Of a stretch of 64,000 nt of DNA, positions 3,405-52,396 are shown in pieces; the stretch's first letter is position 1, and each line of letters opens with the position of its first letter. A program made the position numbers and the translations under genes. The stretch lies in sequence record ON529852.1. One strand, 5' to 3'. Below the pieces are notes generated by a model. That model was not told the origin of the DNA, searched no databases, and was given only the letters and a program-made list of their open reading frames with translations.

Positions 3405-3430
3405 GTAAAGGAATGATGCGCGGGTGTCAA
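3405..3430 (-). promoter_or_regulatory. conserved phage promoter repeat (class I)
   Basis: TTGACA-CCCGCGCATC-ATTCCTTTAC. Confidence 0.8.
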
Positions 3431-3438
3431 CAACGGCG

Positions 3439-3492
3439 TCACTCGTGCGCTACGCGCCCTCGTGACCGGCTGCCGCCGGCCCACCTTCGGTC
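3439..3492. repeat. 54-bp structured repeat, copy A (copy B at 51791-51844)
   Basis: 27 of first 28 nt identical to copy B; lies 8 nt from the -35 box in both copies. Confidence 0.85.
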
Positions 3493-8751: not shown

Positions 8752-8988
8752 TTAAGTCCAGCCGATCGCCTTGCTGAGTTCGGGCGTCCAGTCGCCCAGG
8801 GCGCGGAACCGGGCCTGGATGCGTTCCAGGATGGCGATCTCGGCGTCAAGGACCTCATGAAAGTCGTCGCGGCCCAGGGCATGGTTGGCGGGGGACGGCA
8901 GATGCCGCAGCCAGCGGCCCAACTGCATCTTGTCAGCGGTCTCGACCTGTTCGGGCGTCGGATAGAGGCTCATGCGCACGCCCGCCAT
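8752..8988 (-). CDS. hypothetical protein
   Basis: ORF in coupled chain. Confidence 0.65.
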   Translation of the reverse strand: MAGVRMSLYPTPEQVETADKMQLGRWLRHLPSPANHALGRDDFHEVLDAEIAILERIQARFRALGDWTPELSKAIGWT

Positions 8989-9599
8989 TCCGCGTGTTCG
9001 CGCAAGATCGCCGCCACTTCCCGCTCCTGCGGCGTTTCCGCATAGAGGGCGTCATGGCGCCGGCGCTCGACCCAGGATGCGGGCGGCCGGTAGGCCGCCA
9101 GCGCCTTGATGAAGAAGGGTGCGATCTCGTCCCACTCCATATAACCGTCCAGCGGATGGACGCTGGTGCGGCGATGCTCGGCGTGGGGATGCTTGTTGAC
9201 GCCGGCGTCGATCGCGCCGTCCCGACTATGCGGGTGCAGGCCGATGCGAACGCGGGCGCCGCGATACCGGGCGTAGAAGACCGTGCCGTCGGACAGTCGC
9301 CCTTCCCACTGACTGGGGCAGACCCGACAGGTCTGGACGACCTCGGCGAACACGTCGGGGTCCAGGCGGAAGTCGCGCACGTCGAAGCGCGTCCAACTGA
9401 AGCCGAGGTGCTTGTGGATCGCCCGGCTGCGGCGACCGGGTCGGGCCTGGGCGGTCATCGAATGGAACTGGGCGAAGACCGACCGCGCCAACAAGGAGGC
9501 GGGCGCGTTACGCCAGGCCCGCGAAGGTTCGTTTCGGATCAGCGCGCGCTGCCCACGCAGGTGCGGGAGCGGGCCGACATAGGTGGCGACAACGATCAT
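8970..9599 (-). CDS. hypothetical protein
   Basis: ORF in coupled chain. Confidence 0.7.
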   Translation of the reverse strand: MIVVATYVGPLPHLRGQRALIRNEPSRAWRNAPASLLARSVFAQFHSMTAQARPGRRSRAIHKHLGFSWTRFDVRDFRLDPDVFAEVVQTCRVCPSQWEGRLSDGTVFYARYRGARVRIGLHPHSRDGAIDAGVNKHPHAEHRRTSVHPLDGYMEWDEIAPFFIKALAAYRPPASWVERRRHDALYAETPQEREVAAILREHAEWRACA

Positions 9600-10096
9600 T
9601 GTTTGGCTTTCAACCGCCGCTCGACGCTCGGCGGCACGAGCCAGGACATATCCTCGCCGATGCGCGCGAGTTCACGGGCCATGCTGGAGGAGACGTGCAG
9701 GTAGTCCGACTGGCAGATCAGATAGACCATCGGCAGGTCAGGGGCGATCCGTTCCATGACGCCATGGATGCCGAACTCGTCGTTGAAATCGCTGGCCTGG
9801 CGGAAGGCGCGAACGAGGTGGGTCGCTTCCACGGACCGGGCGGCGGCCGCCAGGCTGCCTTCGAAGGCGAGCGTAAAGATGCGCGACGCGTCCTCGGGGA
9901 ACTGCGCCTTGCACGCCTCGTAGGCCATAAAGGACCGTTCTTTGGGTTCGAACAGTCCACGCTTGGCGGCGTTGCTGCCCACCGCCACATACAGGACGTC
10001 AAAGACGGTCAGGGCCTGACGGATCACGTCGAGATGCCCTCGGGTGATCGGGTCGAACGACCCGGCGTAGAAGCCGATTTTCGGCCCCTCGTTCAT
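9596..10096 (-). CDS. coaD: phosphopantetheine adenylyltransferase
   Basis: YAGSFDPITRGHLDV (HxGH), LVRAFRQASDFNDE and VSSSMAR match CoaD signatures; 166 aa is the expected size. Confidence 0.9.
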   Translation of the reverse strand: MNEGPKIGFYAGSFDPITRGHLDVIRQALTVFDVLYVAVGSNAAKRGLFEPKERSFMAYEACKAQFPEDASRIFTLAFEGSLAAAARSVEATHLVRAFRQASDFNDEFGIHGVMERIAPDLPMVYLICQSDYLHVSSSMARELARIGEDMSWLVPPSVERRLKAKQ

Positions 10097-26798: not shown

Positions 26799-27622
26799 CC
26801 CGGCGCGTCGCCGTAATCGCGTTCGATCGGTTCAGCGCCCGCCATAATGAACTCGGTGCGGTTGACGACGCGCTGGAGCGGCGGGACAGACAGACGGGTC
26901 ATGGAGGAGCGAACCACCGACGTGTCCTCAAGACGCGCCGGGCGCATGGCGGCGGGAATGCGGGCGGCCTCGGCCGGCGTCAGGGGCCGCTCGACCGTCT
27001 CCTTGCGCACGAACGTCCCAAGACGGAACGCCTCAGGGTAGTCGGCGAACACCACGCCCTTCTCGGCGATCATGTCGACCATCGCCTGGCGCCCCTTGCC
27101 ATGCATCTGGCTCGGCGAGTATTGCGCCCGGCACGCCATGGAGGCGGCGTTCTTCTGGCAGTCGAGGTTACGCCACAGGAACATGTTGGCGGCTTCCCAC
27201 GGGTGGGGAAGCTGACAGACACGCGCGTCGAACGCCGGCAGGCGATCGTTGAACGGCTCCCAGTAGCGGATGGCGTGCGCCATGCGCGCGGCCGCCATCG
27301 ACGCCAGCACCGAGGTCATCTTGACGATCTTGCCGGAGAAGAAGATGTCGCTCTCGTAGTCGGGCGCCTCCCACACCAGGCTGATCTCGTCGGACTGGAC
27401 GTAGCCGATCTTGGCGTGGGTCTTGTCGACGAGATACTCCGCCACCACGATCATCGCCTCGGTCATGCGCGGGTCAAACGGCCGCTCCATGCCCTTGGTG
27501 AACTTGGAGAAGCCTCGGCCGTCGATGCGGGCGTAGACCGGCAGGGACGGGAAGAAGCGGCGCGCGGTCTCGCGTCGCTCGTAGTCCTTCATGCGGTCGC
27601 CGAGTTCGTCCTTGGTCGTCAT
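26795..27622 (-). CDS. tRNA(His) guanylyltransferase Thg1-like 3'-5' polymerase
   Basis: LGDRMKDYE, YARIDGRGFSKFT...PFD, GYVQSDEISL, FDARV, F.WRN.DC.KN motifs. Confidence 0.92.
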   Translation of the reverse strand: MTTKDELGDRMKDYERRETARRFFPSLPVYARIDGRGFSKFTKGMERPFDPRMTEAMIVVAEYLVDKTHAKIGYVQSDEISLVWEAPDYESDIFFSGKIVKMTSVLASMAAARMAHAIRYWEPFNDRLPAFDARVCQLPHPWEAANMFLWRNLDCQKNAASMACRAQYSPSQMHGKGRQAMVDMIAEKGVVFADYPEAFRLGTFVRKETVERPLTPAEAARIPAAMRPARLEDTSVVRSSMTRLSVPPLQRVVNRTEFIMAGAEPIERDYGDAPG

Positions 27623-28098
27623 GGGAATCGTTTCCTCCGCGCAGCGGCCACAATGGGATCGGGCTTCTTATCGACCACCGCTCGGGGTGATCGCTCGCTG
27701 GCCTTCGGCTGCGCTCGCGCCCGGCTGCCGCCGGCCTGTCCTTCGGACGCCGGGGCGGTCTTCTTGGGCGTCTCGGCTTTCTCGACCTTCTTGGGCGTCT
27801 CGGCCTTCTTGCGCTCCGCCATCTGGGCCATCACGGCCGGATCGGGCGGGGCGATCTCGTATTTGATCGGCGCCAGCTTGTCCCAGCCGAGCGTCTTTTC
27901 GTTCTCCATGGCGGCGCGCCCGGCGTCCTCCAGGGACATCAGCCGACCGGCCTTCTTGGTCCGGCCCGATTCGGTCGGCAGGTGGACCTCGTAGAGGACG
28001 CGCCCGGTCTTGGTCTCGACCTTGCCGGTCTGGACCAGGTGCATGATGACCATGCCGGCCTTGTTGGCGTAGGGACAGCTATGCAGGGGTGCGCTCAT
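27619..28098 (-). CDS. hypothetical protein with Lys/Pro-rich tail
   Basis: KAETPKK duplicated. Confidence 0.7.
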   Translation of the reverse strand: MSAPLHSCPYANKAGMVIMHLVQTGKVETKTGRVLYEVHLPTESGRTKKAGRLMSLEDAGRAAMENEKTLGWDKLAPIKYEIAPPDPAVMAQMAERKKAETPKKVEKAETPKKTAPASEGQAGGSRARAQPKASERSPRAVVDKKPDPIVAAARRKRFP

Positions 28099-43997: not shown

Positions 43998-44855
43998 TCA
44001 GGCGACGCGCAGGCGTTCCACGAAGGGCGCTTCCAGCGCCATCAGTTCATCACGCCGCGCGCGCAGACGTTTGAACTTGTCGCGATAGCCGTCCTGCTTG
44101 TCGTATTCCTTGGCGAGACAGGCGTGGTAGAGGCGATCGGCGAAGTCGAACGACAGCTTGTCCAGGACCGTTTGCAGGCTCTCCTCGGGGATGTCGAGCA
44201 GGAAGCGCACGGCGCGGACCACCAGGCGGTGGTTCGGCTCCTGGATCAGGTCCAGGTATTCGGCCGGGGTGGAAATGCCCGACAGGTTCAGCGCGGCCTC
44301 GATGTCGGCGCGCTCGCCGTTATACTTGGCGTAGTAGCAGAAGATGTGCGGATTGATCAGGCCCTGATCCTTCAGGAAGGCGTCGATCTTGCGCTCATGG
44401 GTGCCGGTGATGGTCACATCGTCGACGAACAGCAGGACCTTGTCCTGGATGAAGTCGCGATTGATGAACAGCTTGTCGGCTTCCAAAAGGGCCTGGCGCT
44501 GCTCCTTGGGCAAGAAGGAGTAGTCGGCGATGTAGGACATGGTCCGATGCATCGTCGTGAATTCGACCATGCGGTGTCCCTCGCGGGTCAGCAGGTCGTT
44601 CAGCCGGTTCATGAAGTGCTCGGCCAGGATCGAGGCGGCGATCGGCACGACGTTGAAGGCCGAGGGCACGACCACGCAGCGGTCGGTGATCAGCATCCGA
44701 CGGTGCTTGGCGTAGAAGGCGTCGGCCATGGCGTGACCGAACTGCCGCGCCACGAGGTCCGAGCCGAACTTCAGGCGCGAATAGTCCAGCGGGTTGAAGG
44801 AAGCGGTGTCGAGGCACGAAAACTCGTGGACGACGAACTGGCCTTTGGCGCTCAA
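43998..44855 (-). CDS. type I phosphoribosyltransferase-like protein (Ter-cluster-associated type)
   Basis: VLLFVDDVTITGTHE PRPP-binding loop; YSRLKFGS, VVVPSAFNVVPIAAS. Confidence 0.75.
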   Translation of the reverse strand: MSAKGQFVVHEFSCLDTASFNPLDYSRLKFGSDLVARQFGHAMADAFYAKHRRMLITDRCVVVPSAFNVVPIAASILAEHFMNRLNDLLTREGHRMVEFTTMHRTMSYIADYSFLPKEQRQALLEADKLFINRDFIQDKVLLFVDDVTITGTHERKIDAFLKDQGLINPHIFCYYAKYNGERADIEAALNLSGISTPAEYLDLIQEPNHRLVVRAVRFLLDIPEESLQTVLDKLSFDFADRLYHACLAKEYDKQDGYRDKFKRLRARRDELMALEAPFVERLRVA

Positions 44856-45511
44856 GCGATCAATCCTTTCAGCAGGGGCGCGAGGCCCTCGGGGTTGGGG
44901 GTGTAGGCGAAGCGGATGCCGTGGGCTTCACAACCGCCGTCGCAGATTTCGTTGTCGCCGACGTGAACGATTTCCGTCGGATAGATGTCGATCGCCGAGG
45001 CCTTCGCCTTGACGATGCGCCAGAACTCAGGGTGCGGCTTGGACACCGCGTGGATGTCCGAGAAGACCTTGAAGGCGAAGGGCACGTCCAGCCGGGCCAG
45101 GGCGGCCTCATGCAGCACGCGGCCCCGAATGAAGTTGGTGTTGGAGCCGATCGACACCTGCACGCCGGCCGCATGGACCGCTTGCAGGGCCTCGATCACG
45201 TCGGGACGGATGAGGGGCGGATGGGCGCGGAAGGCCTCCTCCAGACGGCGCTGCAAGGCCCAGGGGATGATGTCCCCGGTCGGGTCGATCGCCAGAGCGA
45301 ACTTCTTGTAGGTCGCCTCGCTGGTCAGGCCCTCGCCGCGTTCCTCGGCGGCGCGATCGGCGCCGTCCTTGTGCTCGCGGTAGACCGCCTTGATCTGGTC
45401 CAGATCAAACGGGAGGTCGCGGAACACCGCATCGCGGGCGGTCGAATAGGCGGGGTTGGCGCTGATGATCGTGTTCCACACGTCCAGCGAGATCAGCCGG
45501 GGGCGGCTCAT
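44852..45511 (-). CDS. HAD-superfamily hydrolase
   Basis: ISLDVWNTII, IGSNT, SKPHPEFW, IVHVGDNEICDGG. Confidence 0.85.
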   Translation of the reverse strand: MSRPRLISLDVWNTIISANPAYSTARDAVFRDLPFDLDQIKAVYREHKDGADRAAEERGEGLTSEATYKKFALAIDPTGDIIPWALQRRLEEAFRAHPPLIRPDVIEALQAVHAAGVQVSIGSNTNFIRGRVLHEAALARLDVPFAFKVFSDIHAVSKPHPEFWRIVKAKASAIDIYPTEIVHVGDNEICDGGCEAHGIRFAYTPNPEGLAPLLKGLIA

Positions 45512-47854: not shown

Positions 47855-48033
47855 GCGGCGCTCTCCTCGACGAGTTCGACGGACTGGACGTAGTTGTGCC
47901 CCTCGATCTCCTTGATGATGTCTTCGGGCCGCGACCAGTAGGCGTCAGGATCGGGGTTCAGCAGCACGCGCACCTTCAGTTCGATGATGGTGTCCGTGGG
48001 CTGGGGTTTGTAGCGGAACCGATTGCCCATCAC
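47851..48033 (-). CDS. hypothetical protein
   Basis: ORF in coupled chain. Confidence 0.6.
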   Translation of the reverse strand: MMGNRFRYKPQPTDTIIELKVRVLLNPDPDAYWSRPEDIIKEIEGHNYVQSVELVEESAA

Positions 48034-48710
48034 GCGGCTCCGGCGACGACGACACGGTCGAAGCGGGTCACCTCGACCAGGCGCCAGGACGGATCAAGGG
48101 CTTGCAGTTCGGCGTGCTCCTGACGGGCGACGTCGAGGTCGGTGTAGTCTGACCGATCGCCGGACGCGTGAACGACCTCCCAGTAGACCTCCTTCTCGGC
48201 GTCCTTGGGGTCATGGGCGGTGCCGCCGTAAGCCAGGCGGTCGTAGACCTCCTTGATCTGGTCCATGTCCTCCAGCTTGGTCTCCATGTAGGCCATGGGG
48301 ATCATGGCGAACTGGCGCTGGTCGATCGGCGTCAGGTCGCTCCACAGATAGCCCATGACCGGGAAGGCGTCGGCGACATAGTCCATGATGGCGGTGATGC
48401 GCTGCTGCCCATCGAGCAACAGGCCGTCATAGGGGCTGTCGAGGCCGCCCACGCGGTTGACGATGTAGGCGCCCAGCGGCAGGCGCTGCCAGATCGATTC
48501 GATGAACCGCACCTTCTGCTCGGTCGTCCAGACCGGCGGACGTTGGAAGTCAGGCAGGATGAAGTTTCCCAGCTTGCGCTCGCCGGCGCGCAGCGGGCGA
48601 TCCCACATGGCGTCGGGACGGTAGATGCTCAAAATGGTGCCCGAGGTGTTGCTGGCGCGGAACCACGGGATCGGCATCTTGCAGCCTTCAGGGATGGCGG
48701 TCTTGGGCAT
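48030..48710 (-). CDS. stand-alone DUF262 (ParB/Srx-fold, GmrS-like) protein
   Basis: LPDFQRPPVWT...FIESI...PLG...LLDGQQRITAI; start moved to MPKTAI. Confidence 0.85.
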   Translation of the reverse strand: MPKTAIPEGCKMPIPWFRASNTSGTILSIYRPDAMWDRPLRAGERKLGNFILPDFQRPPVWTTEQKVRFIESIWQRLPLGAYIVNRVGGLDSPYDGLLLDGQQRITAIMDYVADAFPVMGYLWSDLTPIDQRQFAMIPMAYMETKLEDMDQIKEVYDRLAYGGTAHDPKDAEKEVYWEVVHASGDRSDYTDLDVARQEHAELQALDPSWRLVEVTRFDRVVVAGAA

Positions 48711-48741
48711 GGTGTCCTCCAGGTCGTCGTTGATCAGGTGT

Positions 48742-48767
48742 GTAAAGGAATGATCTGCGGAGATCAA
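48742..48767 (-). promoter_or_regulatory. conserved phage promoter repeat (class I, -35 TTGATC)
   Basis: TTGATC-TCCGCAGATC-ATTCCTTTAC. Confidence 0.75.
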
Positions 48768-51756: not shown

Positions 51757-51782
51757 GTAAAGGAATGTTCTGCGAATGTCAA
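51757..51782 (-). promoter_or_regulatory. conserved phage promoter repeat (class I)
   Basis: TTGACA-TTCGCAGAAC-ATTCCTTTAC. Confidence 0.8.
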
Positions 51783-51790
51783 CGGGGTGT

Positions 51791-51844
51791 TCACTCGTGC
51801 GCTCCGCGCCCTCGTGACTGGCTGCGCCAGCCCCACCTCCGGTC
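51791..51844. repeat. 54-bp structured repeat, copy B
   Basis: Near-identical to 3439-3492; wholly intergenic here. Confidence 0.85.
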
Positions 51845-51847
51845 AGG

Positions 51848-52396
51848 CTAGGCGGCGTATCGGTCGAGCATCCAGTGCAGGTCCAGCGGCTCGAAGGCGT
51901 CGAACTCCTCGATCAGGTCGGCTGTCACGGGAAAGGCGATCACTTCAGCCGAGGCGGACGGGACGACGCTGCGGCGACTATCCGCCACGGCGCCCTTGCC
52001 GCGTCCGATGCTCTGGCGAGGCTTCACGCCGCGTTTCGGCTTGTAGGTCGCCTTGCGGCGCAGGGCGTTGCTCTGCTTGGACGTCTCGGCGTCGTCGGCC
52101 CGCTTCAGCCCCAGGCGGTCGAGCCGGCCCAGGACGGCGCTGCGGCTGCGATTGCCCATGAGCAGGCTGATCTCCTGGGCGGTCTTGCCCTCCCGCCAGA
52201 GCCGGACCAGATCGTCAACCTCGGCCTGGGGCCAGGCGTGGGTCGGCTTTTTCGGCTGCGCGGCCCTGCGGGCCTGGACCTTTGCGATCCGGCGCAGTTC
52301 CGCCCGCTCCTGCGGATCAGCGGGAACCTCCATGTCGTCCCAGTCACCGGCGCCGCGCCAGTCTCGGCTCGGATCGCCTTCCAGAAGCGTCGTCAC
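51848..52396 (-). CDS. gcrA: GcrA-like cell-cycle regulator, N-terminal domain only
   Basis: WPQAEVDDLVRLWREGKTAQEISLLMGNRSRSAVLGRLDRLGL matches the GcrA N-terminal domain; GTG start overlaps serS stop; no C-terminal CxWP-type domain. Confidence 0.8.
   Translation of the reverse strand: MTTLLEGDPSRDWRGAGDWDDMEVPADPQERAELRRIAKVQARRAAQPKKPTHAWPQAEVDDLVRLWREGKTAQEISLLMGNRSRSAVLGRLDRLGLKRADDAETSKQSNALRRKATYKPKRGVKPRQSIGRGKGAVADSRRSVVPSASAEVIAFPVTADLIEEFDAFEPLDLHWMLDRYAA

Follow-up and report, generated by a model that had tools for sequence, protein, structure and literature searches.

Two nearly identical 54-nt sequences, each apparently able to fold into small hairpins and each lying beside a promoter-like motif, stand 48 kb apart in the DNA analyzed here. 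They raise the question of whether such a repeat is a genuine structured element and, if so, whether it serves as RNA, as DNA, or as a mobile unit. The window, by which we mean the whole 64,000-nucleotide stretch that was analyzed, matches Brevundimonas phage vB_BpoS-Kabachok (ON529852.1; 356,285 bp; Dolichocephalovirinae) at 100% identity; a record position minus 62,000 gives the window position. The initial annotation placed copies at 3439-3492 and 51791-51844 and counted four substitutions and two indels between them, and we obtained the same coordinates, on the + strand, and the same differences, each indel being of a single base. The features of the window needed below are as follows.

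3439..3492 (record 65439-65492), + strand: element copy C, three hairpins, 75.7 bits, E 3e-15
27691..27748 (record 89691-89748), + strand: third, diverged element copy, 57.5 bits, E 3.5e-11
51791..51844 (record 113791-113844), + strand: element copy D, 75.8 bits
3450..3869, - strand: KABACHOK_01280, hypothetical protein, whose last 14 codons are element sequence
51848..52333, - strand: GcrA-like cell-cycle regulator gene, ending just short of copy D
3405..3430, - strand: promoter-like motif before KABACHOK_01270, 8 nt from copy C
51757..51782, - strand: promoter-like motif before KABACHOK_02280, 8 nt from copy D

The substitutions that separate copies C and D are a TAC/TCC loop change, a C-G to T-A pair and a TTC/TCC loop change, while one of the indels lies in the hairpin-2 loop and the other in a spacer; the compensatory change is the C-G to T-A exchange in hairpin 2, all the rest falling in loops or spacer. 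The genes adjoining both copies run leftward. Copy C has such genes on either side, and its hairpin-1 loop is the annotated stop codon of KABACHOK_01280, whereas copy D lies 3 nt past the stop codon of the GcrA-like gene. The third copy is situated within the annotated leftward CDS KABACHOK_01760, adjoining a Thg1-like gene, and its outer stem shows A-T to G-C compensatory changes.

A covarying three-hairpin family in giant phages

A DNA search of the phage with a 106-nt query missed several copies, so we used covariance models instead: R1, built from six equal-length copies, and R2, a second model built from 50 matches. These models found what the initial annotation had suggested looking for, namely more copies in the full genome and in relatives, and covariation among them. 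The Kabachok genome contains 10 copies, three of them in the window; the two copies noted at first are both real, and as a description of the repeat they were incomplete.

Kabachok element copies, record starts: 9000 (+), 9444 (-), 9825 (+), 17572 (+), 27848 (+), 54333 (+), 65439 (+), 89691 (+), 113791 (+), 156734 (+)

Domovoi and Marchewka have 8 copies each, Kikimora and Gurke 11 each, and CcrColossus and CcrPW 6 each; four IMG/VR contigs contain one to three copies apiece. There was no convincing match in phiCbK, Bajun, CcrSC or CcrBL9, which gave weak hits only (E > 0.003), and no copy was found in 151 sampled Caulobacterales genomes searched with strict filters. A degenerate pattern scan of genome contigs returned at least 120 chance matches in unrelated high-GC genomes, and none of the 100 that we tested fitted the model. 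Rfam gave no match at the gathering score within the 64-kb window. At the locus with three copies, which we call the hub, it gave no match to the element even at E<=1, the lone hit being a weak ffh sRNA match away from the element. The phiCbK genome paper makes no mention of a repeat of such kind. The ~55-nt element family is phage-lineage-specific and, as a three-hairpin family of giant Caulobacter and Brevundimonas phages, has apparently not been described so far.

The element is laid out as a 4+1+4-bp hairpin with conserved mismatches, followed by a 5-bp hairpin and a 3-bp hairpin. In the alignment of 40 distinct sequences, standard pairs fill 97.2% of pair cells, a value somewhat inflated by the fitting of the alignment to the model; shuffles gave 86%, and slid partners 26-38%. 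Double-sided changes, which are visible in the raw rows, occur at 9 of the 17 pairs (63 compensatory cells), and the covariation score was equalled by none of 500 shuffles. Among the covarying pairs, hairpin 1 contributes C-G, G-C and A-U, hairpin 2 C-G/U-A and G-C/C-G, and hairpin 3 A-U/U-A; the lone G-C within the hairpin-1 internal loop and the outer TCAC/GTGA stem covary as well. The three hairpins with their TCAC/GTGA closure, and the proposal of an element selected for its structure, are therefore upheld by the family as a whole. The same is seen at orthologous loci, where structure-preserving variation takes the form of the C-G/T-A switch at the GcrA locus. This answers the refuting condition of the initial annotation, under which only two copies would exist and orthologous loci would show no such variation. 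We regard the three-hairpin fold as strongly supported. Taken singly, copies give weak folding z-scores (-0.02 to -1.9), as is expected at 75% G+C. A chance duplication is ruled out by the 28-nt core of copies C and D, which has exactly two matches where 0.00 are expected by chance, together with the covariation over the 40 distinct copies.

Copy C is 100% identical in Kabachok, Domovoi and Marchewka, whereas identity over the flanking 1 kb is no more than 83% and 76%. Copy D occupies a syntenic position in Domovoi, Marchewka, Kikimora and Gurke, where it has undergone compensatory changes, at loci whose Kabachok-group and Kikimora-group flanks are barely alignable. The last copy (Kabachok 156734, Kikimora 122036, CcrColossus 163477) has homologous neighbour genes in all three lineages. 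Judging from this pattern of sequence conservation, the element is under selection. At the protein level, only residues 1-103 of KABACHOK_01280 are conserved: its Kikimora ortholog has neither the element nor the last 36 residues, and copy C is a lineage-specific copy that stands in place of the gene tail. We rejected a coding role, since the element is read in differing frames or left untranslated among the copies, as downstream of the GcrA-like gene, and is antisense to some neighbour genes.

The promoter-like motif consists of TTGACA, 11-12 nt and CATTCCTTTAC. It occurs 28 times, always on the - strand, between 19 and 138 kb of the record, as compared with ~0.8 matches expected in shuffled sequence; its conserved downstream box is unlike the usual -10 element. 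The 8-nt gap reported between the repeat and the -35 box was confirmed, with TTGACA at record 65425-65430 and 113777-113782 and the copies starting at 65439 and 113791. The wider idea of an element placed upstream of promoters is true of copies C and D and does not extend beyond them, as only 2 of the 10 copies and 2 of the 28 promoters are involved. At the copy D locus of Kikimora, the gap between element and promoter is 10 nt, not 8. Loci that include a promoter run in the order stop, element, promoter, start. We conclude that promoter adjacency is incidental to the element.

Genome-wide polarity and the hub near terL

We then considered how the copies are oriented. Nine of the Kabachok copies are on the + strand and one is on the - strand; the ratio is 10:1 in both Kikimora and Gurke and 6:0 in both CcrColossus and CcrPW, the records of the latter two having been deposited in opposite orientation. 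Within each IMG/VR contig, the copies are co-oriented. Since many of the copies are orthologs, this polarity amounts to ~17 independent loci. A co-oriented gene or tRNA ends 0-21 nt before the element at no fewer than nine independent loci, and at five or more loci the element is antisense to a leftward gene whose 3′ end it adjoins or lies in; in the sense and the antisense contexts alike, it is one and the same DNA strand that has the given loop and mismatch letters. The triphosphatase gene provides an example: in Kikimora it runs in the direction of the element downstream of it, whereas its Kabachok annotation is on the strand opposite to the nearest element, which stays +. The orientation of the element tracks the genome, not the neighbouring genes.

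Outside the hub, each copy either forms the last codons of a gene or is found at, or no more than ~20 nt from, a stop codon or the 3′ end of a tRNA. The next start codon is 18 nt after the copy at Kikimora 122036 and 5 nt after that at Kabachok 156734, and these two copies thus appear to be transcribed within polycistronic mRNA. The start codon after the latter copy (156734-156786) belongs to a possible unannotated ORF for a small hydrophobic protein (Kabachok record 156792 onward, +), which is conserved in Domovoi and Marchewka.

The copies of Kabachok occupy one arm only, from 9 to 157 kb of the record, with none in the remaining 200 kb. Those dispersed outside the hub all lie on the same side of it, at intervals that grow with distance: 8, 10, 26, 11, 24, 24 and 43 kb in Kabachok, and 4, 9, 15, 14, 23, 19 and 34 kb in Kikimora. 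The hub itself is as follows.

Kabachok record 8859-10060: gene-free 1.2-kb hub with element copies in the order +,-,+

It contains an AT-rich patch, six ACCACCGCC boxes and tandem 43-bp and 25-bp arrays (GGTCAAGG-type units). The sole inverted copy is always found in such a gene-free hub, ~6 kb from terL. Domovoi, Marchewka, Kikimora and Gurke all possess a hub of this kind, inverted copy included; the CcrColossus hub has no tandem array. In Kikimora, ACCACCGYC boxes also occur beside several dispersed copies and in some promoter spacers. The proteins encoded on the flanks of the hub could be assigned no function on examination. A sigma-54 reading of the TGGCAC-like hub repeats was discarded by inspection, because the spacing does not fit. 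GC skew showed no origin; it follows gene direction because of codon usage.

Copies have also been gained or lost. A 285-bp cassette of a promoter plus a small ORF (record 27563-27847) is inserted exactly between the CCA end of tRNA-Arg and the element; it is present in Kabachok and Marchewka and absent from Domovoi. Between Kabachok and Marchewka, homology breaks off within the element. Together with the lineage-specific copy C, these cases place the element at indel and replacement junctions between sister phages, as has been described for PeSLs (see below).

Candidate functions of the element

Which of the two strands folds bears on the function of the element. On the + strand, all loops are of the form T-N(1-2)-C closed by C-G, and the hairpin-1 mismatches are T·C, C·T and T·C. 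The complement, the G-rich - strand, has G-N-A loops and the mismatches G·A, A·G and G·A, and each of its hairpins contains a mini-hairpin motif, GCGNAGC, GCGNNAGC or CCGNAGG, as these have been defined (PMC13037366). At least three such motifs are present on the - strand of all 40 distinct copies. DNA with these motifs is reported to be extraordinarily stable, and RNA much less so; the motifs are found at the primase origins of G4, St-1 and alpha3 and at RSF1010 ssiA (CCGAAGG), and the hairpin promoters of N4 have GCGGAGC with a 5-bp stem and a 3-nt loop (PMC13037366). The - strand folded better than the + strand in 4 of 4 copies tested, with RNA parameters (-22 to -23 versus -15 to -20 kcal/mol) as well as with DNA parameters (-12 to -14 versus -9 to -11 kcal/mol). 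In a poorly aligned part of hairpin 1, six diverged copies pair G with T on the + strand, which corresponds to A·C on the strand proposed to be active.

The reading that we tentatively prefer is that the element is a strand-specific ssDNA signal, similar to a single-strand initiation (ssi) signal. We infer that its working form would be the single-stranded DNA of one strand, the G-rich complement of +. The hairpin cluster would stay free of SSB and would mark a place for priming or for loading of the replisome, and the repeat-rich hub near terL, with copies on both strands, would be the origin-like centre. Because the loop and mismatch letters are fixed with respect to a DNA strand and the orientation tracks the genome, a reading at the level of a DNA strand explains more than one at the level of RNA. 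The origins of G4, St-1 and alpha3 and the ssiA and ssiB sites of RSF1010 are likewise GC-rich hairpin clusters on one strand with GCGNAGC, GCGNNAGC or CCGAAGG, and the G4 origin is drawn with several hairpins (PMC13037366). The comparison with ssi signals is one by analogy; we found neither sequence homology nor a primase gene. The signals also differ in setting, as ssi signals belong to ssDNA phages and plasmids, with one or two per replicon, whereas the element has 6-11 copies over 110-150 kb in one arm of a dsDNA jumbo phage. In RSF1010 oriV, iterons and an AT-rich stretch are combined with ssi sites, the latter on opposite strands, a layout that the phage hub resembles.

Several results weigh against the ssi-like reading. 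Primase families (DnaG zinc ribbon, Toprim_2 and Prim-Pol) were found neither in the carrier phages nor in their relatives that have no element, in family searches whose sensitivity in these phage records was checked with TROVE, and there is consequently no phage enzyme to match such a signal. Copies confined to one arm are not what a general lagging-strand signal predicts. The weak z-scores, the G·T pairs, the uninformative GC skew and the CcrColossus hub with no tandem array also weigh against it, and the abutment of copies on stop codons and tRNAs fits an RNA role as well. Among sequencing runs, one cDNA viral-metagenome run contained 6% of the words and was uninformative. A more specific form of the ssi-like reading, which we consider doubtful, is that a polar series of G4/ssiA-like signals on one strand of a dsDNA jumbo phage recruits the host primase or replisome, or else a phage enzyme. 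Such a series would thin with distance from the iteron-rich hub, in a phage with no recognizable primase.

The main rival, only slightly less probable than the ssi-like reading, is that the element acts in RNA and marks the 3′ ends of cistrons, where it would hinder decay, serve as a processing site or terminate transcription weakly and without a U-run, in either orientation; REP or intercistronic stem-loops that protect the message upstream would be comparable. The positions of the non-hub copies at or near stop codons, tRNA 3′ ends or last codons are consistent with this, as are the order of stop, element, promoter and start and the two copies in Kikimora (122036) and Kabachok (156734) that apparently lie inside polycistronic mRNA. 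However, the orientation tracks the genome and not the adjoining gene (9 co-oriented versus at least 5 antisense loci), so that transcripts from the two contexts would not share the invariant loop and mismatch letters (UNC in one, GNA in the other). Moreover, no T-run accompanies any copy, whereas the phage uses canonical terminators elsewhere. The element as an ordinary intrinsic terminator was accordingly rejected, since no copy in Kabachok, Kikimora or CcrColossus is followed by a T-run on either strand.

Less likely still is a boundary cassette of the PeSL (promoter-early stem-loop) kind, in which the repeats would provide shared homology for the swapping of modules, and copies C and D with their promoters would be terminator/promoter units. 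PeSLs are composite promoter/terminator motifs at indel junctions; those of T4-type phages are likewise repeated units of stem-loop plus promoter, situated at gene boundaries, in a variable early region and at indel junctions (PMC2839356, PMC4122927). Copies C and D have this layout, and the 285-bp cassette between tRNA-Arg and the element, the break of homology within the element between Kabachok and Marchewka, and the replacement of a gene tail by copy C all point in the same direction. By contrast, the unit of stem-loop and promoter is limited to C and D: the other 8 of the 10 copies have no promoter, the other 26 of the 28 promoters have no element, and several copies have been syntenic since the three lineages split. 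Homology for recombination alone would need no covarying hairpins, invariant loop letters or genome-wide polarity, and the element is unlike a PeSL in having three covarying hairpins, fixed loop letters and an orientation that follows the genome, with no T-run. A role in module exchange is compatible with either the ssDNA or the RNA reading.

We consider it very unlikely that the element is a hairpin promoter of the N4 type, at which a polymerase would read extruded DNA hairpins and make rightward transcripts, antisense to the GcrA-like gene and KABACHOK_01280. Hairpin 2 of the - strand does have the form of an N4 early promoter, with a 5-bp stem and a GGA, GCA or GAA loop (GCGGAGC-type), and the promoters of the N4 virion RNA polymerase likewise combine a 5-bp stem and a G-N-A loop in a few co-oriented copies (PMC13037366). 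The uniform orientation of the element, and downstream genes that in some cases start 18-37 nt on, with no room for a sigma-70-type promoter, would also suit such a role. The element differs, however, in its two extra hairpins and its internal-loop helix, and we found no matching polymerase: PF00940 (T7/N4-like RNA polymerase) had no match in six phages, in a search in which the control genomes were also silent, and there is no large carrier-specific protein, the largest carrier-only ORF being one of 582 aa with a partial match.

The remaining candidate, a selfish REP- or MITE-like element moved by an HUH nuclease (RAYT/IS200-type), is the least probable of all. REP and BIME elements of enterobacteria are likewise imperfect palindromes of small size, found 3′ of genes and between cistrons, and they stabilize upstream mRNA; our element shares with them that it is a short, structured repeat, dispersed at gene ends and present or absent at some loci. 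REPs, however, number in the hundreds within host chromosomes, face either way and are paired with RAYT genes, whereas the element has ~10 copies, low in number, stable and syntenic, confined to phages (none found in the 151 sampled Caulobacterales genomes) and in a single orientation. The HUH-nuclease reading suggested by the initial annotation found no support in the proposed search for a RAYT gene, as PF01797 (Y1_Tnp) was absent from Kabachok, CcrColossus and Kikimora and matched in 6 control genomes. Nor did the MITE reading: the ends are TCAC... and ...GGTC, with no terminal inverted repeats, and the junctions compared among Kabachok, Domovoi and Marchewka show no target-site duplications and have just TC-N-C microhomology in common. 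Among the possibilities first listed for the repeat, an ssDNA site is the best fit and a 3′ RNA signal keeps some likelihood, while the REP/HUH and MITE options are not supported.

Co-occurring genes and implications

A phyletic profile identified the proteins common only to the carriers of the element, among them Ro60/TROVE, RlaP, a ComF-like PRTase, an HAD hydrolase, GmrSD_N and gp30.3. This set includes no nuclease, primase or polymerase that could be linked to the element, and because the carriers are probably one clade, the co-occurrence of proteins and element is weak evidence. The Ro60/TROVE+vWA protein of Kabachok (484 aa; record 197095-198549, -) is 68% identical to that of CcrColossus. 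Like the element, TROVE occurs in Kabachok, CcrColossus and Kikimora and not in phiCbK, Bajun or CcrSC. About 500 nt upstream of the TROVE gene, record 199048-199118 gave a weak match to YrlA (Y RNA-like), with 27 bits against a gathering score of 69 bits. The RNA-repair nucleotidyltransferase RlaP is encoded at Kabachok record 184714-185835, and a permuted tmRNA match (record 194435-194690, -; 57.1 bits, gathering score 47) lies among three tRNA genes. Within the window, 43998-45511 and 48030-48767 (-) encode the ComF-like PRTase, the HAD hydrolase and the GmrSD_N-domain protein, found in carrier phages only; the PRTase is 69% identical to that of CcrColossus.

Whichever of the ssDNA and RNA readings applies, the annotated protein tails that extend over the element need correction (for example KABACHOK_01280, KABACHOK_01760 and CcrColossus gp291). 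If the element acts as RNA, it would represent a new family of structures at mRNA boundaries. If it acts as ssDNA, initiation signals made of hairpins would extend from ssDNA phages and small plasmids to dsDNA viruses of 300 kb. Present at ~10 sites in each genome, with a single orientation and a single hub, the element offers a small, sharply defined and conserved handle on how replication or early transcription is started and organized in phiCbK-type giant phages.
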